Assembly: GCA_021613535.1 (NCBI GenBank)
Contig: CP075494.1
Span: forward strand, 10,602,001-10,666,000
DNA length: 64,000 nucleotides
DNA from: Adineta vaga
Taxonomy: Eukaryota; Animalia; Rotifera
Direction of reading: 5' to 3'
Both the position numbers and the translations under genes were made by a program. Of the stretch, positions 10,201 to 22,760 are shown one piece after another; the stretch's first letter is position 1; each line of letters starts with the position of its first letter. The notes beneath the pieces are model-generated. The model was not told the DNA's origin. It saw only the letters and a list, made by a program, of their open reading frames with translations, and searched no databases.

Positions 10201-11107
10201 GAACTTGTTCGGCCAATCATCAAACTTCTAAAACCTGAACATACAGCTTTGGAAAATTTCGAAGCTTTAATGGCATTAACTAATCTAGCTAGTATTGGAG
10301 AGAATGTTAGAAAGCGAATTTTAAAAGAAGACGGATTTTCCAATATTGAACAATATATGTTCGAAGAACATGCATTGTTACGACGAGCAGCAACTGAATG
10401 TATGTGTAATTTAGTTATTCAAGAAGAAGTAAGATTATTGGACTAAATATATAATATCGGAAGAGATTTGATTTGAATTAGGTTGTGAAATATTTTACAA
10501 GTGAAAATGATCGAATAAAATTATTAGTTTTATTATGTGGTGAAGATGATGAACCATTGATCAAAGCAGCATTGGGAACACTAGCTGTTCTATCATCTTT
10601 ACAAGCAGATATTGAATATATAAAAGATTTAAATTTAGAAGATGAAGAACGTCAACGATTGAATAATTTAATGAATGACAATCGAATTATTTGTCAAAAG
10701 ATTCTTGATGTTCGTATCTTTAACTGGAAGTCATCTAGTTTTCATGAATAATGTCGCTTTGTATTTCTAGGTGAAATCATTGCCAGATATTTTCAAACAA
10801 TTATGTGCATGTAATAATCCTGATCTACAATTTCGGGCTCTTTATATCATCCGAAATATTGTTCAAGTGAACAAAGAATTTGCAATACAAATAGTTGAAA
10901 CTGATTTAATGGATGTTTTATTTGCAGTAAAAGAGATTAAAGATGCAAATCTAGTCAATGAAAAGGTAAATCCATCCTTTTTCATATAAAAAAAACCAAT
11001 TGTTTCTTTTCTAGAATCAAAAGATTGCTTCGGATATTGTTCAAATCTGTTTAAAATATGGTCTTATCCAACGAAATAAAGAAGAAACTGCTGCTTCTAA
11101 AGAATAA
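7293..11107 (+). CDS. unc-45: UNC-45 myosin co-chaperone (TPR + central ARM + UCS domain), ~17 introns
   Basis: [32 protein letters not shown]; UCS motifs [75 protein letters not shown]. Last exon ends ...TAASKE* at 11107. Confidence 0.95.
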
Positions 11108-11265: not shown

Positions 11266-11360
11266 CTCTCCTTCGTCTTACATAGCTCATGGCAGGAGCA
11301 GGACAATAAAGAAAGACAATCATTAATTTTAAACATTTGAAGAAGAAGAATACGAAGAAA

Positions 11361-14300
11361 ATGAGTAATAGTACATGGCAACATCCGTTTGTGAATATAT
11401 TCAAACATTTCGATATTGGTTCGACGAAAAAATGTGCCAAACAAGGCGATGTAACTGCTCTCATGGTACGATATGTCTAAACTCTCTTTTAAATTCTAAA
11501 ATAGAATTGATTTTATCATCTCATTAGGATCGTGATTTGAAATGTACGGTATTCCGTATTCGTGGTCTCGTTCCAGCGAATAATTACATTCAATTTCCTG
11601 CTCAATTACCACAACAAAATCTCGCGTTAACAGGTCGTTTATTCTACATATTATTTCGACCAATTTATGATAAATTCTTTTCCATTCATCTTGATATTTT
11701 CACACATGAACAACATGTTGTTCGTATATCATTATCGAATTTATTTCGAGAAATGAAAGTGACACAAACTTGTATTCAATTTCCATATACATCAACAAGT
11801 CAAGATATTCGTTGGACAGTTTTATGTTTAGATTTAGAATCAATTCTATTAACTTACATGACAAATCAACACTATCATATGATTAAATCATTTCAATTAT
11901 GTGGAAATATGATGGTAAAAAATTGTTTTTCATCGCAATTTTTCTATGAACCAGGATTAAATCCACATAAAGCAAAACAGAAAGGTTTAAAATGTACAAA
12001 TATTCGTTTATTACCACGTGAATTATCTTATCCTATTGGTAAAGATGAATCATGGCATAGTAAATATGATTTTACCATCATTCCAATTTCATCATCATCA
12101 TCCTTAATTGATCAACAATCGACAGAAATTTCCAATGATGTTCGTTTACAAACACCAAGAGAAATCAGTCAATCATTGACTGATTTAACATTGAATACAC
12201 ATAGAACAATGTCACCAAGAGATAGTCAAGCAACTACATGGCGTTCAACAAATCATCCTGTTGATCGTTTTCCATCGTTACCTGCGATGCATGAATCATC
12301 ACTTCCATCTGTTTCTTCACGTAGTAATAATGAAGGTATTCATCTTTTTGTCAATCCTCAATCGATGGGTGATGAATCCAATTTTGATTTACCATTGTCA
12401 ACGGATCGTTCTCAACAACCACATATACCTGATTCAATGCTTCGACTACGTACTGTCATTGGTGTCGGTAATGGTACAACAAATTGTACAAATCTTCTAT
12501 GGACACAAGATGGAAATTATATTCTCTATCCATCGAATGCAATTGTTGTGCAAATGCATGTTGAAACTCAACAGCAATTGTTTTTTATTGGTCATACGGA
12601 TAAAGTTAGTGCGATTGCATTCAATGGTAATTCTTCATTGTTAGCGACGATACAAGCTGGACCGAATGGTAAACGAAAGAGAACGATTTTTGTTTGTATG
12701 ATTGATAATCTTCTATTCATTTAGGTATTCTTCGTTTATGGAAATTTGAGACGCGTCGTTGTATTTGTGTTGTTCGTGTGCCAGGCACATCTAATTTACA
12801 TGCACTTGATTTTGGTATTCGTAATCTTACGGATGCTTCATCATCATCTTTAATTGTTGTTGGTCATGGTGAACATCCTCAACAATCTCGTACTGTTGTT
12901 TGTGTTTATAATACATTAAATGCACATAAAGGTTCGATAGATTTAATCTGTCGAACAACAACAGATGCAACAATTACTCATATACGTTTTGTTCCATATG
13001 ATTCAACAAGATTTGTATCGATTGGTTCAGATAATATTCGTTTTTGGCGTATTAAAAATGGCAATGATTTAAAATCGATGAGTATATCTGTTGATGATAT
13101 TGATCATTTAGAATATACAGATTTACAATTTGAACATTTAACAACGAATAAATTAAATGAATTACTCGTTTATATTTCATCAAAAAGTGGTCATGTCTTA
13201 GAATTATTATATGATGAAAGACGTGTTACAAAAATTCATCGTTTATTACCAAAAAAACATTCCAATGGTTCAACTGAAAAGATTACTATGGCTAATGGAC
13301 CATCCATTGGTATTTGTGCATTTGCATGTACAAATACATTTTGTATTACTGGTTCAAATGATGGATATGTTCGCGTATGGTCGAACGATTTTACACAAGT
13401 TTATATTGAAGCAAAACATGATCAAGCTATTTGTGGTTTAATAACATCACCTGATCAAACACGTGTATTAATTTTGACAATTTCCGGTTCAATTGGAATC
13501 TTAAATCTTGTCAATAGAGAACATTTGAATTTAATTCGTGCACATACACAACGTGTAACTGATATTGATTATGATGATACAAGAAAACAAATGATTAGTG
13601 TCGGCGAAGATGGTACAATACGAATCTGGTGTTTTCGTACAGGAAAACAATTGTCTGAATTTATAGCGGAAAATGAAACGCCAGTTATTGTTACATATGC
13701 ACCCAATCGACAAGTATTTGCATGTGGATTTAATAACGGAACGATAAAAATTTTTGATTTGAATACATCAACTATTTCCACAGAAATTAAGTAAGTAGTC
13801 GAAATTGATATTTATTTCAATTTTTACATTGTTGTTCGTTAGAAATTATACAACAAGTGTGACTGGTTTACTCTATGCACATAATGGTAGTCGATTGATC
13901 AATAGCGATGAAGAAGGTAATCTATGTTTATTGGATGCGAATGATAATTATAAATTACAACGAACAATGTCGAAAGCGTTATGCTTGTTACCAAAAAATG
14001 TGGTAACATTATCGATTAGTTCAGATGGTAAACATACTGCTTATGTTGGTCCAACAGAATTTGTTGTTACTATCGTTGAAACGAATAGTTTAAATCAAAC
14101 ACTTCGAATTGATATCAGTAGCTGCAGTCAAATTACCAATGATCGAAGTACAGCCTCCTCTAGTGAAGCAGCTCTATTTGTTCATTTTGCACCAAATCGA
14201 CAGTTATTAGTGGCAACAACGAACTTGAAATTACTTAAATTTGATTCACATTCCGGCAAACTTTTAAATATTGTAAGATGAGACTTGTATTTACTTACAA

Positions 14301-17300
14301 CTTCCTAGAATTTCCGATTCATTTAGATAAGTAGTGTACACAAACATTCATTTGATTGTTTGGGTTTATCATCCGATAGCCAGTACCTAGTGACTGGTGG
14401 TGATAATATGCTGAAATTTTGGGATGACGTGAATTATCAAGTAAATTTAATCGAATTTCTTATTAACGAGAAGCATTGTTTTCTATGTAGAGTTTTGTTG
14501 GTCATTCCGAATCCATACGAAAAGTTTTCTTTACTGATGATAATATGCATGTTGTTAGTATTGGAGATTCGATCTTCATTTGGGATGTACTAGCATGGAC
14601 AACACCACGACCAGGTTTATTAAAGTTAGTTACATTTCTTTTTCTTATAATCCTGAGTTCTAAAGTAAGATTTATATTTTCAGTAACACACCATACATTG
14701 CTCCGCCGAAAAGTGAGTTTGATGAAACTGGAAATGATGAAAAACTAATAGTTTTATTTAGTTGTTCAACATGCACCTGTTCAATCGAATTTCGATAATA
14801 ATGGTCAACCAAGAAATCCTCCCGAACCATTTCAATACCATCAACAAACGAATGGAAATACAGCACAAGCGATAACACGATCATTATCAAATGCTGAATT
14901 AGATAAAACAACAAGTGTATTGCAAGGACAAAAGTAAGCAAGACATTACAATCGAGTTTTTTTTGAAGAAACTTCGATCTTTTTAAAGGAAAATAAACAA
15001 TAAAAAATCAACAAACAAACAAATAGATCATTCACCAACAATTCGACGTCATTTTATTCAACGAATCAATCATACACAATTAGCAAAAGTAATATACAAT
15101 ACTAATATTCCTATTGTGACTCTAATCTGTACTTTCTAGAAACGTTATGTCGCTCCACCTAATCAAGAAAGTCTGAAACTTCAATCTGTCATTGGTTACA
15201 ATGGCAATGGAAGAGAAAATCTCGTTTGGCATGCACATAGTGGATTCTTCGCATATACCGTCGGTTGTAATATCATTGTAGAAAATCTCAATAATAATCA
15301 TCAAACATTTTTAACTGGTAATATTTCTTTCTACTTGAGAAAAACAGGAGTGAATTTATAATTTAATTAGGACATACAGAAGAAATCTCAACTATGACGT
15401 TATCGAATGATGTAACGATCTTAGCTAGTGCACAATGTTCACTAACAACAATGAATAAAGATGAATTACAAACGAAAATTATCATTTGGGATATTAAAAC
15501 ACTTCGACAAAAATTGTTTCTTCATCAAACAGTTTATGCTATTCAATCCATGGCTTTCTCACGGTATTTGAAGAAGATTTTATGAAATTTCTCAATTTAT
15601 TGTTTCGTTTATTTTTGTAGAGACGATCGTTTTCTCATCACTATGGGTGATTATCGTAAACCTCAATTAACTCTATGGTCTACACAAGATTTTACTAGTT
15701 TACTCAATTGGCAAGATGAACTATCATCATCATATATCAATTGTCTTACTTGGAATCCTATGCGTGCCAATGAATTCTGTCTTGGTTGTTCAAATAATCT
15801 CATTCGTTTTTGTACCATTATCGAACAAACGAACGATACTAATCTACGTTTACAAGTTGTTAATGGTCAAGTCCCATCATCAATCAGTGAACATACGAAA
15901 AAGACATGTGAAATAACTGCATGTACTTATTTAATTTCCAGTACAAATCTTGTTCTATGTTCAACTAATTGTGGTTTTGTTACTTGCTGGAATACACGAA
16001 CAAATACATGTTTACTTCATTGGAAAGCAGATACGAATGAAATTTGTTTTATGACATCGATAAAACATCAATTAATTACAGGTTCATCAACGGGCTGTTT
16101 AAGATTATGGAATACGGAAAATCTTGAAATTAATCTAGGTTCACCCAATACAAATGATTCGTAAGTTCAGGTTCGAAACTAATTCAATAGAGAAAACATT
16201 GTTGTTTTCTTTGTCTAGAAATTATGGTTTAAGTATTCAGGATGAATTTCAACTTGATGATGGAATTATTAGTGGAGCATTTGATAATATTTTTGATATG
16301 GGAATTATTGGAACATCATGTGGATCTCTATGGTATATTTGTTGGACAAGTGAACGATCAAAAACTCGTCTTGTTGCCTCACATACTGATCGCATAACGG
16401 GTGTTATACCGATTGAAGATACACATATTGTTACAAGTAGTTTTGATGGAACAATTCGAATCTTTCAATTAGAAGATCGAAATGAAATTCTTCGTTTTGA
16501 TGCGAATGGATTAGTAAGTCGATTAATATGAACGAAAAGCAATGACATATTTTCTTTCGTCATATTTAGAAAGTCACCTGTTTAACGTCATGGGATAATT
16601 CTATTCTACCCACAGCTGATGCATTTGGGCCAACAAGTCCAATTAAAACTATTCAAACTACAATTCGATCTATTGTTGCCGGATATAACGATGGTACATT
16701 ACGTATATTTAATCTTCTGCATGGTCAAATGGTACTTAAATTACATCCACATACTGCAGCTATCAGTGCAATTCATACACCATCGAAAAGTTCGTTATAA
16801 AAACGCGTTTTCTTTCTCTAATCTTTATCTATTGTTTTTTTTTGCTTTTTAGCAATCATTTGTCTATCTGGTGCTTCGGATGGTTCTGTTGCTGTATCAA
16901 ATCTTGCTCAAGGTATTGTTTTACGTGTTCTCAATGATCATCGTGGTAATGCACCAATTTGTACAATTGATTCCAAACAAATCTTAGAAACAAATTCTTA
17001 TATGTGGTTAATTTCCAGTCATGATCGACGTGTTAGTTTATGGAAATCCAATCATCAATCTGATTTCTGTCAATTAATTGATTGGTTAACATTTTCAGCA
17101 CCATCCTATGCACCTGATGGAACAACTCAGGAAAATAATTGGCAATCATATCCACCAAGTTTAGCTCGATTTATTGACGTAAATCTTTTACTTTATATTG
17201 GTTATGGAATAGAGAAATCCATTCAAATTTATAATCTCGATAGCAAACAAATCGTTCGTACAATTCCATTAAGTCAATGGTGTTCATGTTTTGATCTATC

Positions 17301-17517
17301 AAATCTCAAACCTGATGATGATGAAAATCGTTTGATCGCAATTGGTACTAAAGATCGTTTAGTACAATTAAAAGATTATACTCAGGGTACTTTTCAGGAT
17401 TTTATTGGTAACAGTGATACATTATTAAATATCAAATTTATTCATAAAAAATCCCATGATTTATTAGTAACAACTTCATACAATGAAATATTCATTTGGA
17501 AAGTTCTTTTAACTTAG
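11361..17517 (+). CDS. WDR90: WDR90/POC16 centriolar protein (CFAP20/DUF667 domain + WD40 propellers)
   Basis: N-terminal WQHPFVNIFKHF...GDVTALMDRDLKCTVFRIRG..PANNYIQFP..LALTGR; KRYVAPP..ESLKLQSVIGYNGNGRENLVW; DWLTFSAP; QDFIGNSD; many WD40 repeats; multi-exon. Confidence 0.93.
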
Positions 17518-18408
17518 TTGGATTTATACATTCTATAGATGTTAGCTTCTTCATTGTTTTCTTTTTGTATAACATTTATCTTTAAAAGTAAAAAGAACAA
17601 TAAAATTCTTATAGAATAGAGACAAACAATTTGTTTATCAAATGTAGATCAGACTTCAATGTCATTACTAATGTAAGAACTTTTAGGAGAAAAAAAAACG
17701 TTGTCAATCATAAGACAAACTTAATTTAAATCTATTATTATAAATTAAAACATCAACTTAATCAGGAATTGAAGTAGTCTTATATTCAAGAAAATACCAC
17801 AAATTAAAACTAATGCGTGGATTGTATAAATTCAGTAGGAAAAGTTTACTCTCAAGACAAATTCTTCTCTAAATATGTATTCATTTCCATCTGGAAATAA
17901 CGTCTTGTCTCTGTTGGATAAAATAATATTCTGATCATTCTCCTTGGTAAAGAAGTTCATTGATCTACTGACAATCAAGTAAAACTATACTTCATTTAGT
18001 ATGTCTAAATTATCATCATTCATTCAAGTATTCGTCTTCTATCCATGTCATTTCTTTGTAGTAGATATATATATATATATATATATACAATAGAATATAA
18101 TTGCTTTTCAATGATATAATAGATGACACGTTTCTCTCAACAAAGTTGATTAAAAGTCTTCGTTAACTGTGCACGTGAATTAGTACGTCTGTCTGATAAT
18201 GGATATTTTATTTTTTTTAAAAACGCAATAGATTGATTCGTGTTTAAGAAGTCAATCTTTAACAAGACTAATGATTTCTTATTAGACATGACTTCTTGAA
18301 ATTATTTTGTCAATTACCGCCCACATCTTTCTTCTATAATATAATCAGAAATGAATTATGAATAGTACTTTCATTTCTACTTTGTCTTTAGACTAAACAA
18401 TTGTCAAC

Positions 18409-18705
18409 ATGGTTTCACCACGAATTTATCTTCTCCTTGCTCTTCTTATGTTAATACTTCCTGTTCAAAGTATTAACTATGTTGGAACATTAACAGCAAG
18501 CGAATGTAAAGCTTGTAAGTAGACCATGAATGTGATATTTTCAATAAAATCAATTGAAATTTTAGATTTTGCATCGGATGATGTTAATAAGAATCTTCAA
18601 GCATTGTTCAGTTGCCCAAAAAAATGGCGACCTTTGGCAAAAAAACGGATTTCACGCTTCGAACATCAACATTCATCTACTTCTGCCGATGAAGATCAGA
18701 AATAG
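18409..18705 (+). CDS. Secreted C-x18-C peptide precursor A (81 aa)
   Basis: Exons 18409-18514 and 18566-18705 (phase-1 GTAAGT..TAG intron): MVSPRIYLLLALLMLILPVQS-INYVGTLTASECKAYFASDDVNKNLQALFSCPKKWRPLA-KKR-ISRFEHQHSSTSADEDQK*. Signal-peptide-like N-terminus; paralog of B and C. Confidence 0.85.
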
Positions 18706-19326
18706 AAATGATTTGAAATCAACAATTAATACCTTAATGTATATACAATTATAAGTATTTGTATTTGATCATATTCGATTTATAGACAAATATTTCCTTT
18801 ATGCTACAAATAAATGAAAACAAGAAAAAAGAAATTCCATAACGTGAAAATTTGTTTCTATTCAAGAATGTAAATAAAACCATTCAAATATAGAACGAAA
18901 GAATGTAATAGATTCGATTTTTCGTCAAGTATTTGATATAGGGATATATGAAATTGTATTGATTAATTTTTAACGAAAAAAAAAAGGATATTCAAATGTA
19001 AGAACTCGTTGGCGGATTGATTGTTATTGCCAAAATTTGCCACACCTACTTTTTCTCCATAACAATATGCGTCGTTCACATTTTTTCTCATGAATTATAT
19101 CTCACATAGAATCACGTATGGTTCCAATTTCGTACGATAACTAAGTTTAAAAATATCTTTTGATTGTTTGATAAAATTCGTGCTCTATCTCTTTTTTCGT
19201 TTTAAAACAAGAGAAATGGCATGTCGATTATTCATGTGTATTTAATTGAGTTGTAGTAGATCGAATCAATTCATTTGTTATACAAAACGAACAAGATTAC
19301 TCTATCAAGTGATAGTATTTTCACTA

Positions 19327-19557
19327 ATGTCGATTTGTCTTTATGTGTTCATATTGATTCTTTTATATGCAATGACAATTTGTAGTTTTCCCTATTTTGA
19401 AACATTAACAGAAAAGGAATGCAGAACATGTAAGTTCGAAATTGTTGTTTTATTTTTAAAGAATTTCTTTTCTTGACTAGATTTCACTTCAAATGATCGT
19501 CGTAAAGTCATTTATGCTTATTTTACTTGTCCAAAAAAATTACAACCAAAACTTTAA
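19327..19557 (+). CDS. Secreted C-x18-C peptide precursor B (59 aa)
   Basis: Exons 19327-19429 and 19481-19557: MSICLYVFILILLYAMTICS-FPYFETLTEKECRTYFTSNDRRKVIYAYFTCPKKLQPKL*. Same intron position and phase as A and C; AATAAA near 19606. Confidence 0.85.
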
Positions 19558-20622
19558 ATAATAAAAGAATTGTCATCCGTAATTCGATGTTTTTTATTTT
19601 TGCTGAATAAAAGAAAAAAAAAGAAACTTGTTCATGTATTTATGATAATGTTCATCTCCAGTAAACAATCTATTTGATAAATATCTTGAAATGGTTGAAA
19701 AGGTTTAACTTGGAAATTTCTTAGGTTTTTTTCCTTTTTTGTGTCATGCGACGTTATTCATTGATGTTGTTTTATACAAATAATATGAAACTTTTTTTTC
19801 TCTCTCTTTCGTTCGTACTTATTTTACACAATGAATAATCAATAAAAACGACATATTTCTTCGCCCGAGTCGAAATAAATGTATCATGACACATATTCTC
19901 AATCAACATTGGTATCATACAATACACCTTCTTTCGTTCAGATCGGATTGTGAAGGAAACAGATAAAGAGTAGACGATTGAACTTGTTCTATTTAAAAAT
20001 ACATCCTCCAACGCTTATGCATATTCAAAGATTTTCTTCCCATTTAACTATCATTTAGAACTTTTCACTACATTGAGAATAGCTCATTGAAGCTAATTTG
20101 TTTTTTCCCCCTCGTCCTTGACACGCGTTTAACAAACCTACGCATATACATGTGATTTCACTACTTTCTTTCTTTCTTCAAAATAACGAATTAGACTGGT
20201 CATTGATCATCTAAAACTTGTATAAATAGAGCTAAATAAAATAGGATATTATTCACTTCATGGTGACTTGAAAATTTCCAAGCTCAGTTGGTATAAAGCG
20301 AGATATTAGTCAACAGTACGCATCAAACTTTGTCTTTTTCTGTTCTTTTCTTTGACACACATTGATGTTACATCATTATCGAAAAAAAAAACAGGTGTAG
20401 GTGTATTTCTTTCTTTATTGATTCTAGTGTTGTATAATTGGGAAAAAATATAGATTATATTCATTGTTATAGTTAAGGTTTAAATTGAATCAATAATAGT
20501 AAGTTTTGAATCATTCGTTTATTTTTGTCACTGAGTTTTTTTTATTTTCGCGCTTGTTATCATTTTCTTCATCTTTATTTTCAAGATAATAAACTTTTGT
20601 TTAATAATTTTAACAAGCAACT

Positions 20623-20870
20623 ATGTCGTTTTATTCATGGTTTATCCTATTTCTTTTACTGATTTATCAATGTTCAGCACATATAACAAGTTCCATGACA
20701 GAAAAAGAATGTAGGGATGGTACGTAATTAAAGAGCTATTCCACACTTTATATATATATATATATACATTTTCTATTCTTTCTATCACAGCTTTTGCGTC
20801 CGGCAATTACAAAAGATACCTTGAAGCGTATTTCAAATGTCCATCAAGATATCGTCCAAATGCTCAATAG
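20623..20870 (+). CDS. Secreted C-x18-C peptide precursor C (58 aa)
   Basis: Exons 20623-20719 and 20791-20870: MSFYSWFILFLLLIYQCSA-HITSSMTEKECRDAFASGNYKRYLEAYFKCPSRYRPNAQ*. Same intron position and phase; TATA-like GTATAAAG near 20292. Confidence 0.85.
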
Positions 20871-21466
20871 GTGTCTCCGTTTGCAGCTTATTTCAGTCAA
20901 GATTATCGATGATCTCGCTTTTTTTTTTGTTCATCCTTTATTCTGTGAATACATTTGTAAATTTAACTAGAGATAAACTAACTCGTGTCAGTAAATTTTT
21001 CTGAATCCTAAATAAAACGAAATATTTTTTTTTGACTGACCCTAAAGAACAGTTTTCAGGCTATGTTAACCTCCTACACTGATGTTTTGCTGTTTATTCT
21101 CACCATTACTTCTAAACGGTTAAGTACAGTTTGACGTCAATCATCTGATTCTTAACGAATCTGTCTGTTTTGAGAGAAAGAAAATTGGCCAAACTTCATT
21201 TTTTGCTTATATTAATAAATAGGTATTTTGAAGTAAAGTAGACGCCTACTTTATTTATTTGAATGTAAAACGAATCCTTTTCTCAATGAGAGAAAAGAAT
21301 ATATTAACGAGAGTAAAGTTTTTTTTTATTTTGTTCTTATTTTAAAAAAAGCAGTTTTTTATGCGTAAAAACAGTCTGACTTCTTTCGATAGTTTTTTTG
21401 TTGTCTCTTAAAGATGAATTAATCCTACTAGATAAAGGTTCGACTTTTAGATTAGAACGAATCACA

Positions 21467-22171
21467 ATGGATTTTTTAAGTTTTGGTAAAGATCAAATGG
21501 AAGATGGATCATTGGATGGCATGCTTCAGCAAGCTGGTATTGATGATGTGGGATCATTTGTGAATCAATTTCGAGGTCAAGCAAATCAACAAGCTCAACA
21601 AGTTCAACAATCACCTGACTTTATGTCCATGGGTGGTTCATTTTTAAATCAAGTATAATGAAATCAATGATTAATTAGATTCTACATTCCTTGTTTTAGT
21701 TTTCTGGCAGTAAAGATTCTCCTGATATGGTTCAAGGTGCTTTTAATGCATATAAAATGTTCTCTGGCGGTCAAAGTGGCGGTCAAGGTGGTGGTGTTTT
21801 GGATGATATTAGTACGTATAGTAAATTCGAACTATGAAATATAGAACAAGAATATATTTAGGTTCAACCTATGACAATGCACAGAAAATGTATGCTTTGT
21901 ATAAACAATTCGATAAAAATGGTGATGGAAAAATTACAGCTGAAGATATTCAAATATATCTTCAAGAAATGGGTCTTGGCGCCGTTTCTCCATGTACGTA
22001 ACTGAAAGCAATTGAATAGTTCATGTACCATTGAATTCTATAGATATGGCGAAAGGATTGTTCAAAGCTGTTGATAAAAATGGTAATGGTAATTTAGATT
22101 TTACTGATTTAATGGCCTTATCAGCTATGGTTAATCAATTATCGGGTAAATTTGGTGGTGGTGGTGCTTAA
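21467..22171 (+). CDS. Two-EF-hand calcium-binding protein with Gly/Gln/Phe/Met-rich N-terminus, 4 exons
   Basis: Canonical EF loops DKNGDGKITAED and DKNGNGNLDFTD. Three short GT-AG introns give one frame from MDFLSFGKDQ to GKFGGGGA*. Confidence 0.88.
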
Positions 22172-22760
22172 GAGACAATTGAATTCTTATTCTTACAAAT
22201 TCGAATGGCTTCCTTTTGTAGTTAGAATATTGTCACTTTCTTCAAAACGAATTTAATAATAAATAGTCTTTGATTTGACAAGTAAGACGCATATGGAGTA
22301 TATAACCAGGAGGAAGCATGTAGTTTGCTGATAGATATATATAAACTATACATAGTTATATCCAAAACGTTCATAGAATATTTCGCTAAATCAAGATGAA
22401 AACAACAACATAAATCAACATTTACTTTCAAAAGTAACATCACTTAGGAACTCTAATGTTTTCATTAAACAAACACTGTATTAATATGGATTCGACTTTC
22501 ATCATTTTTCACAATACTATTTACTCAACTGATAAAACAATGTAAAAAATCATCGATAACATATCAATAAATCTTCTGTGTGTTTTTTTACGAAAATATA
22601 AAATTGAAACATATCATCGTTTATACAATTGTCGATATATTTAAAAAGAAAAACAAAGTTTCACAATCATCAATAATTAATTCAGATATGTATGTAAATA
22701 CAAAAAATTTACCTGTATGAATAATCAAAAACGAATGATTATCGATATCAAATGCAAAAT

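Follow-up and report, generated by a model that had tools for sequence, protein, structure and literature searches.

Within a 64,000-nucleotide stretch of the genome of the bdelloid rotifer Adineta vaga (contig CP075494.1, positions 10,602,001 to 10,666,000, forward strand; hereafter the window), we analyzed three small two-exon genes, g1, g2 and g3, which lie on the plus strand at positions 18409-20870 of the window, spaced about 1 kb apart (Table 1). All three introns are GT..AG introns of phase 1, and the codon that they split is in each case the third past the first cysteine. The encoded cores align without any gap and hold exactly 18 residues between their two cysteines (C-x18-C). The first 19-21 residues of each protein are hydrophobic, with small residues at positions -3 and -1 (V-Q-S, I-C-S and C-S-A). 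These signal-like N-termini were judged by eye and by hydropathy, and their cleavage is predicted. Among the types of this family that we describe below, g1 is a type A member with a K-K-R site 8 residues past its second cysteine, while g2 is a type B member that has lost its C-terminal tail. The two-exon genes, signal-like starts, phase-1 introns and ungapped C-x18-C cores had already been claimed in an initial annotation made from the DNA letters, and this description proved to be accurate to the base when compared with the sequence, the translations and the RNA junctions. A rotifer as the source had been guessed correctly, too.

To follow transcription, four public sequencing runs were aligned to positions 17000-22500 of the window, three of RNA type, made from whole animals in two studies (X1, X2 and X6), and one of DNA type (X9). 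The contigs of X1, X2 and X6 are indeed RNA-like: they cover just 16-19 of the 30 bins and spare most of the DNA between the genes. All three contain the junctions 18514>18566 of g1 and 19429>19481 of g2, and X1 and X6 additionally contain the g3 junction 20718>20790, for which a placement one base rightward fits equally well. The RNA-type contigs also skip the introns of a neighboring gene (21653-21699, 21812-21861 and 21994-22043). The DNA-type run, in which 30 of 30 bins are covered, furnished no junction. Moreover, we found untemplated A-tails after position 18850 (g1; X2 and X6) and after position 21046 (g3; X2), and AATAAA stands at 18809 in g1, at 19560 and 19606 in g2, and at 21011 in g3. 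The word depth of the RNA contigs amounts to 83-356 for g1 vs 35-82 for the neighboring gene, a contig depth that cannot rank genes. From this data we conclude that g1-g3 are real, transcribed and spliced genes, with A-tails at g1 and g3. The junctions that had been predicted across 18515-18565, 19430-19480 and 20720-20790 are thus all present in RNA-type contigs of two studies and absent from the DNA run, and the objection that spliced transcripts might be missing fails because the contigs hold exactly these junctions together with the A-tails.

We then asked how large the family is in A. vaga, whose assembly (100.8 Mb, six contigs, 30% GC) was searched in six frames. An exon-2 profile finds g2 at E 2e-8 and g3 at E 4e-9, and profiles built on exon 2 or on the mature peptide of the g1 type lead to five genomic places, namely g1-g3 and two genes on contig C2, c2a and c2b. 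A second scan used gene structure only: a signal-like start, a phase-1 GT..AG intron with a cysteine three codons ahead of it, and another cysteine 19 residues further along. Run over both strands of the window and of 30 kb of C2, 188 kb in all, it found exactly seven genes, g1-g3 and four genes on C2. Because of the genome-wide E-values and the specificity of the structure-only scan, the resemblance among g1-g3 is not a matter of chance. The C2 cluster (G000:C2:7783211-7775265) holds its four family genes, c2a to c2d, over 7.9 kb. In c2c the sequence C-H-G replaces C-P-K, so that the gene is without the Cys-Pro motif, and c2d has four cysteines in the pattern C-x11-C-x6-C-x7-C. Profile and single-exon searches fail to link c2c and c2d to the other members; the same genome searches gave no members beyond the seven, by methods that miss c2c and c2d. 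Since these two escape the profiles, seven is a lower bound, and further divergent copies are possible. The family of three genes that was initially proposed therefore stands as a cluster in the window, whereas the family as a whole comprises at least seven genes, which are spread over two loci and include two types that diverge from the rest.

The two clusters belong to larger blocks. By tblastx, the window from 11.3 to 27.8 kb is collinear, in inverted orientation, with C2:7791.5-7766.4 kb, at about 50-75% amino acid identity gene by gene. The bdelloid genome doubling leaves two ohnologous copies of blocks, and the pattern seen here is the one expected for such copies. Within the blocks g1 pairs with c2a and g2 with c2b. 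The position of g3 matches c2c, and its sequence is nearer to c2d (E 0.003). In a tree built from the 35-column core, the Adineta orthologue groups of g1, g2 and g3 are supported (ultrafast bootstrap 86-99) and the deeper forks are not, so that g3 may pair with either c2c or c2d.

The annotation status of the members differs. Our exon-2 profile search returned g1 as the deposited protein UJR22260.1, "hypothetical protein I4U23_025321 [Adineta vaga]", with 81 amino acids and 100% identity. The cluster had been described as hidden, which is wrong for g1. The genes g2, g3, c2a and c2b were not returned from a collection of 5.8 billion proteins, even though they fit its length window and share search words, and they appear to be unannotated. 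Several deposited bdelloid models of the family look mis-built, namely P0037 (A. ricciae, 141 amino acids), P0055 and P0056 (Rotaria, 141-142 amino acids), P0022, P0029 and P0030; they carry long N-terminal extensions or C-terminal fusions past the core that have no counterpart in relatives.

Relatives are found in other bdelloids at the same place. In A. ricciae (L012) three genes of the same structure are flanked by a WD40/WDR90-like and an EF-hand gene. Two members were found at the same syntenic locus of A. steineri (L013), and 2 to 4 per contig at this locus in metagenomic bdelloids. In one metagenomic bdelloid, recovered from many samples (L018, L030), the four genes follow the order A, B, C, [EF-hand gene], D, and its D member (L018, gene at 10320) shows the four-cysteine pattern of c2d. 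Copy number is stable: A. vaga C2 and the metagenomic bdelloid share all four types as well as their order. When 1.84 billion representatives were searched exhaustively with a profile, 34 cluster representatives matched at E<=1e-3. We checked the names of 20 returned proteins: all 13 that are named by organism come from Adineta or Rotaria and are called "unnamed" or "uncharacterized". Most of the remaining matches are metagenomic open reading frames (ORFs) that start inside or read through the same intron. This search, which very divergent members would escape, returned no family member outside Bdelloidea, and as far as these sequences tell, the family seems to be restricted to bdelloids.

Across species the members share more than the cysteine spacing, which is kept in 19 of 19 tabulated sequences. 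In the motif [FLM]-x-S ... A-x-F-x-C-P the residues S, A, C and P are invariant among 11 aligned members, and F nearly so. A signal-like N-terminus of 19-21 residues with small -1/-3 residues is present in g1-g3, in the four C2 members and in all orthologues; its hydrophobic (h) region spans about 12-14 residues in all members, often with a proline at -4 or -5. The phase-1 intron sits at the same codon in the C2 members and in the A. ricciae, A. steineri and metagenomic loci. Past the core, a dibasic site is found as [KR]-K-R in six of nine type-A sequences and as [IV]-[AV]-K-R-S in most type-B sequences. The net charge of the core ranges from about +1 to +8, and the tails that follow K-R are mostly acidic, down to -8. 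Type-B tails end at the extreme C-terminus in a conserved D-D-F-Y-[LVI]-F-W, which c2b and many metagenomic members have and g2 has lost; the carriers are c2b (L004:7476-7634:-), P0001, P0002, P0004, P0007, P0012 and P0041. This tail, whose tyrosine stands in an acidic, sulfation-like setting, may be a second bioactive peptide or a sorting peptide.

Next, selection was estimated as the ratio of nonsynonymous to synonymous substitutions (dN/dS) by the Nei-Gojobori method on spliced coding sequences, which with 60-80 codons per gene gives rough figures. Between Adineta species the whole g1 gene has a dN/dS of 0.14-0.22. Its 37-residue core reaches only 0.04-0.05 at a dS of 0.9-1.4, its signal peptide 0.21-0.54 and its tail 0.25-0.33. 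For g2 the values between Adineta species are 0.29-0.75, and for g3 the ratio between A. vaga and A. ricciae is not estimable, as synonymous sites are saturated (41% protein identity). The paralogues within the window give 0.36-0.46 at a dS of 1.1-2.0. Among nine type-A sequences from different bdelloids, 16 of the 37 core positions are invariant, including polar and probably surface-exposed ones, the tails vary freely, and the mean pairwise identity of the cores is 75%. The g1 core is under strong purifying selection. Indeed, the idea of old duplications kept by selection is borne out by the saturated dS between the paralogues at a dN/dS of 0.36-0.46, by the g1 core and by the ohnologous cluster on C2. 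A dN/dS near 1, which would speak against function, is refuted for g1 and not supported for g2. The invariance of these type-A positions, polar ones included, next to freely varying tails fits recognition of a specific partner better than a loose requirement for charge or amphipathicity.

For the structure of the core we ran AlphaFold2 on the mature g1 peptide with a family alignment of 11 rows. The model has a mean predicted local distance difference test score of 70.6, with 80-88 over residues 11-40. It contains helices at 9-17 and 21-30, places Cys12 in helix 1 and Cys31 together with the invariant Pro32 just past helix 2, and leaves the tail disordered. The g1 core is thus predicted to be a two-helix hairpin with a Cys12-Cys31 disulfide, in agreement with the one-disulfide helical hairpin that had been suggested at the outset; the disulfide itself is likewise a prediction.

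None of our searches connected the family with a described one, as had also been anticipated. Pfam-A, searched at its gathering scores, gave no family match for the exons of g1-g3 and c2a, nor for ten full-length members, and thus no link to insulin, CHH/ITP, calcitonin, NPY, PDF, vasopressin or defensins. The one match at the threshold, a Pfam DnaT DNA-binding domain on the acidic tail of c2b (25.9 vs 25 bits, E 8e-6), was taken as compositional, and matches to "Fungus-induced" and DUF5993 on the g3 signal peptide (E 0.14) were rejected for the same reason. A profile search of PDB sequences gave nothing better than E 0.14, Foldseek against the PDB no match with E below 5, a wide fold search with VIA-align a best Z of 2.2, and an atlas shape search only generic HEAT-type hairpins; for a hairpin of 30 residues we regard such structure and fold searches as uninformative. 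A literature search on four family motifs, the locus tag and bdelloid secreted peptides found no paper on the family. Two candidates were considered and dropped. A CHCH (twin Cx9C) protein does not fit the single cysteine pair at x18 spacing and the signal-like N-terminus, and there is no Pfam CHCH match. A pheromone of the Aplysia attractin type has six cysteines instead of two, and no attractin row appeared at E<=10 in the profile search of PDB sequences, among which an attractin structure is deposited. Finally, for g1 and for a type-B member from Rotaria, nearly all language-model neighbors are clusters of neuropeptide precursors (neuropeptide S, PDH, AKH, GnRH, NPF, DH31 and corazonin). 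We read this weak lead as a statement on general precursor layout and not as evidence of kinship. Taken together, the peptides form a family that is undescribed and restricted to bdelloids, although its general kind, the small secreted disulfide-stabilized peptides, is known.

The surroundings of the cluster are included in Table 1. The WD40 gene upstream adjoins the peptide cluster at all bdelloid loci examined, and its orthologues in A. ricciae and A. steineri carry a CFA20 domain. The middle exon of the small gene downstream matches C2 at about 7778836, 7777326 and 7773627, a local triplication on C2; its first coding exon has zero Pfam matches. In A. steineri a polyketide-synthase gene encoding 2,833 amino acids (L013:19080-20311) starts about 8 kb downstream of the peptide cluster.

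Table 1. Peptide genes of the family in A. vaga, their transcripts and their surroundings. Positions are those of the window unless marked C2 or L004.
Feature	Position	Strand	Details
g1	ATG 18409; intron 18515-18565 (51 nt); stop 18703-18705	+	81 amino acids
g1 transcript	18390-18850	+	contigs of X1, X2, X6 on 18390-18514 and 18566-18844/18850; A-tail after 18850; AATAAA 18809
g1 coding exon 1	18409-18514	+	signal-like residues 1-21 (18409-18471), predicted cut between V-Q-S and I; mature start to Cys-Lys-Ala and first base of the split Tyr codon; from translation
g1 intron	18515-18565	+	51 nt, GT..AG, phase 1; junction 18514>18566 in X1, X2, X6
g1 coding exon 2	18566-18705	+	second helix (predicted), second Cys, C-P-K-K-W-R-P, K-K-R site, mildly acidic tail of 18 residues, stop
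g2	ATG 19327; intron 19430-19480 (51 nt); stop 19555-19557	+	59 amino acids
g2 transcript	19211-19626	+	contigs on 19211/19217-19429 and 19481-19602/19626/19793; one contig to 19793
g2 coding exon 1	19327-19429	+	signal-like residues 1-20 (19327-19386)
g2 intron	19430-19480	+	51 nt, GT..AG, phase 1; codon position as in g1; junction in X1, X2, X6
g2 coding exon 2 and stop	19481-19557	+	protein ends 8 residues past second Cys; exon-2 profile E 2.1e-8
g3	ATG 20623; intron 20720-20790 (71 nt); stop 20868-20870	+	58 amino acids
g3 coding exon 1	20623-20719	+	signal-like residues 1-19 (20623-20679); X1/X6 contigs reach 135/76 nt upstream of the junction
g3 intron	20720-20790	+	71 nt, GT..AG, phase 1; (TA)n run inside; junction 20718>20790 ("cut +1") in X1, X6
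g3 coding exon 2 and stop	20791-20870	+	exon-2 profile E 3.6e-9
g3 3' untranslated region	20871-21046	+	AATAAA 21011; poly(A) site 21046 (A-tail X2); contig ends 21033-21046
c2a	start C2:7783211	-	structure scan and profile
c2b	start C2:7781804	-	structure scan and profile; exon L004:7476-7634:-
c2c	start C2:7780021	-	structure scan; exon 2 L004:5765-5872:-
c2d	start C2:7775522	-	structure scan; exon 2 L004:1269-1343:-
(TA)n microsatellite	18066-18089		upstream of g1
(TA)n microsatellite	20748-20768		inside g3 intron
Upstream neighbor	11300-17517	+	large WD40 gene, WDR90/POC16 type
Downstream neighbor	21436-22289	+	small gene, expressed; three short introns

What might these peptides do? We favor the view, to which we assign a probability of roughly 40%, that the released hairpin is an extracellular signaling ligand, similar to a peptide hormone or neuropeptide, and that the four old paralogue types have different specificities. 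We prefer it because the type-A core is nearly frozen throughout, because the four types are kept one-to-one without turnover, and because the layout resembles that of a prohormone. In such a scheme the hydrophobic N-terminus would serve as a signal peptide for co-translational entry into the endoplasmic reticulum (ER) and would be cleaved after residue 19-21. Oxidation of the cysteine pair would then give a cationic hairpin of 37-40 residues, in which two short antiparallel helices are clamped by one disulfide and a basic and aromatic patch, P-K-K-W-R-P, sits past the second cysteine. In types A (g1) and B a proprotein convertase could cut at [KR]-K-R or [IV]-[AV]-K-R-S and free the core from a tail that is variable and, in most cases, acidic; g2 and g3 stop right past the core and would need no such cut. 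The hairpin would finally act outside the cell on a receptor.

A number of observations weigh against a signaling ligand. The dibasic site is confined to some members, among them g1 with its K-K-R, and is missing from g2, g3 and the A. steineri g1. None of the members read has a C-terminal glycine as amidation signal before a dibasic site or stop; amidation is common in neuropeptide precursors, yet optional. Both the signal-peptide cleavage and the disulfide are predictions, the contig depths cannot rank expression, and the language-model neighbors score 0.75-0.87, below the trust line of 0.9. Moreover, g2 and g3 evolve much faster than g1, and most neuropeptide families are older than one restricted to bdelloids. 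Last, the arrangement of cationic core, K-R and acidic tail is also classic for antimicrobial-peptide precursors of invertebrates and fish.

A more far-reaching form of the signaling proposal can be put forward tentatively. Here a peptide-hormone system would have been invented in the bdelloid stem lineage: types A-D would have arisen by tandem duplication before the genome doubling, would have been kept in both ohnologous blocks, and would each have a receptor of their own, with type B releasing a second acidic peptide that ends in D-D-F-Y-[LVI]-F-W.

The closest competitor, which we consider rather unlikely, is a defense effector: a secreted cationic hairpin that damages microbial membranes or walls, is neutralized by the acidic tail until the cut at K-R, and gains a broader spectrum through its paralogues. 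The charges of core and tail given above would suit it, as would the tandem, lineage-restricted cluster with the fast-evolving g2 and g3. The K-K-W-R basic and aromatic patch has a typical membrane-binding composition, and the arrangement of signal, cationic peptide and acidic C-terminal propiece is that of the mytilins and myticins of mussels and the piscidins and pleurocidins of fish. Tilapia piscidin 4 is even among the best rows of the PDB sequence search, at a non-significant E of 0.31; that search gave no sequence match to solved antimicrobial peptides. The g1 core, however, is almost frozen (dN/dS 0.04-0.05, with polar positions invariant in nine taxa), which is unusual for immune effectors. 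In addition, g1 has a net charge of just about +2 to +3 and three acidic residues within its helices, and instead of birth-and-death turnover we see the same four types kept in order.

We regard as unlikely an extracellular role without a receptor, be it structural or adhesive (pedal-gland cement, egg shell, cuticle or trophi matrix), inhibition of a protease or ion channel, or a water-borne cue between conspecifics. Such a role would be in line with small, disulfide-clamped peptides that are predicted to be secreted, and with the high RNA word depth of g1, even though depth cannot rank genes; helical-hairpin water-borne pheromones do exist, such as Aplysia attractin. A mating pheromone is nevertheless improbable in asexual bdelloids, and the PDB profile search gave no attractin or inhibitor-family match. 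The peptides have neither repeats nor a low-complexity or Gly/Pro/Tyr-rich composition nor cross-linking motifs, and the 16 strictly conserved positions out of 37 argue for a specific partner.

It is quite improbable that the proteins are not secreted at all and instead act inside the cell or are tiny membrane proteins of the ER, Golgi or mitochondria, in which the N-terminus is an uncleaved anchor and the hairpin a lumenal domain. Signal cleavage does rest on prediction, small single-pass proteins are common and often unannotated, and the K-K-W-R-P..K-K-R stretch resembles a patch of the nuclear-localization type. However, the short h-region, the proline at -4/-5 and the small -1/-3 residues are marks of a cleaved signal peptide, two invariant cysteines at fixed spacing suit an oxidizing compartment, and evolution is slower in the core than in the signal region (dN/dS 0.04-0.05 vs 0.21-0.54). 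That the genes are transcribed yet functionless young ORFs or decaying duplicates, as the short ORFs, the tail lost from g2 and the strong divergence of g3 could suggest, is highly improbable and for g1 largely refuted, given frames and splice sites that are intact in three Adineta species, Rotaria and metagenomic bdelloids, the retained ohnologous cluster, and a dN/dS that stays under 1 in g2 and far under 1 in g1.

Should the peptides be signaling ligands, they would offer a handle on bdelloid dormancy, on entry into and exit from desiccation, on feeding and on sexless reproduction. Peptide signaling in rotifers is barely charted. According to a 2024 preprint, only an AKH-like precursor was known before its homology-based search with NP-HMMer, and it lists arthropod-type families alone for rotifers (10.1101/2024.07.20.604414). 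A homology-based search finds only families known from arthropods and thus misses a lineage-specific family that is expressed and under strong conservation; likewise, four of the five A. vaga members that profiles can detect are missing from the protein collection we searched. An antimicrobial role would make these peptides the first gene-encoded effectors of their type to be described in bdelloids, animals that use horizontally acquired biosynthetic genes against fungi (PMC11258130). Apart from function, the locus is a clean case of tandem paralogues that both copies left by the bdelloid genome duplication have kept, and it illustrates that a scan for gene structure picks up members which escape profiles. 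We see the finding as one of moderate interest: it is solid and easily testable, but animal genomes commonly contain orphan families of secreted peptides.

Several known systems invite comparison. The precursors of mytilins and myticins and of piscidins and pleurocidins are alike in having a signal, a cationic peptide, K-R and an anionic tail, as well as in their tandem clusters and lineage restriction. They differ in that mytilins and myticins have 8 cysteines and a beta-rich fold and piscidins are cysteine-free, the piscidin 4 match being the non-significant one mentioned above; the g1 core is also far more conserved than is usual for antimicrobial effectors. Plant alpha-hairpinins, scorpion kappa-hefutoxins and Aplysia attractin are secreted, too, and consist of two short antiparallel helices tied by cystine. 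Their helices are tied by two or three disulfides (CxxxC pairs or six cysteines) vs one in most members here, with type D carrying four cysteines in another pattern, and we saw neither a PDB profile match nor a fold match above Z 2.2. The short E-C-K-x motif of the family resembles the attractin motif I-E-E-C-K-T-S, which we treat as a lead only.

The small prepropeptide hormones of invertebrates (PDF, the "PP-fold" hairpin NPF/NPY, AKH and DH31) stand apart from our family in several respects. There is no sequence or profile similarity to them, and the family has no amidation glycine, is found in bdelloids only and includes several members without a processing site. Its one disulfide with C-x18-C spacing is not known from PDF, NPF/NPY, AKH or DH31. 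In architecture the two nevertheless resemble each other: a precursor of about 60-90 amino acids, a signal peptide, one conserved peptide of 20-40 residues, a dibasic site and a spacer that varies. Here, too, the mature peptide would be a hairpin of about 36-40 residues, and the language-model neighbors of two family members, as a weak pointer, are clusters of prepropeptide-hormone precursors.

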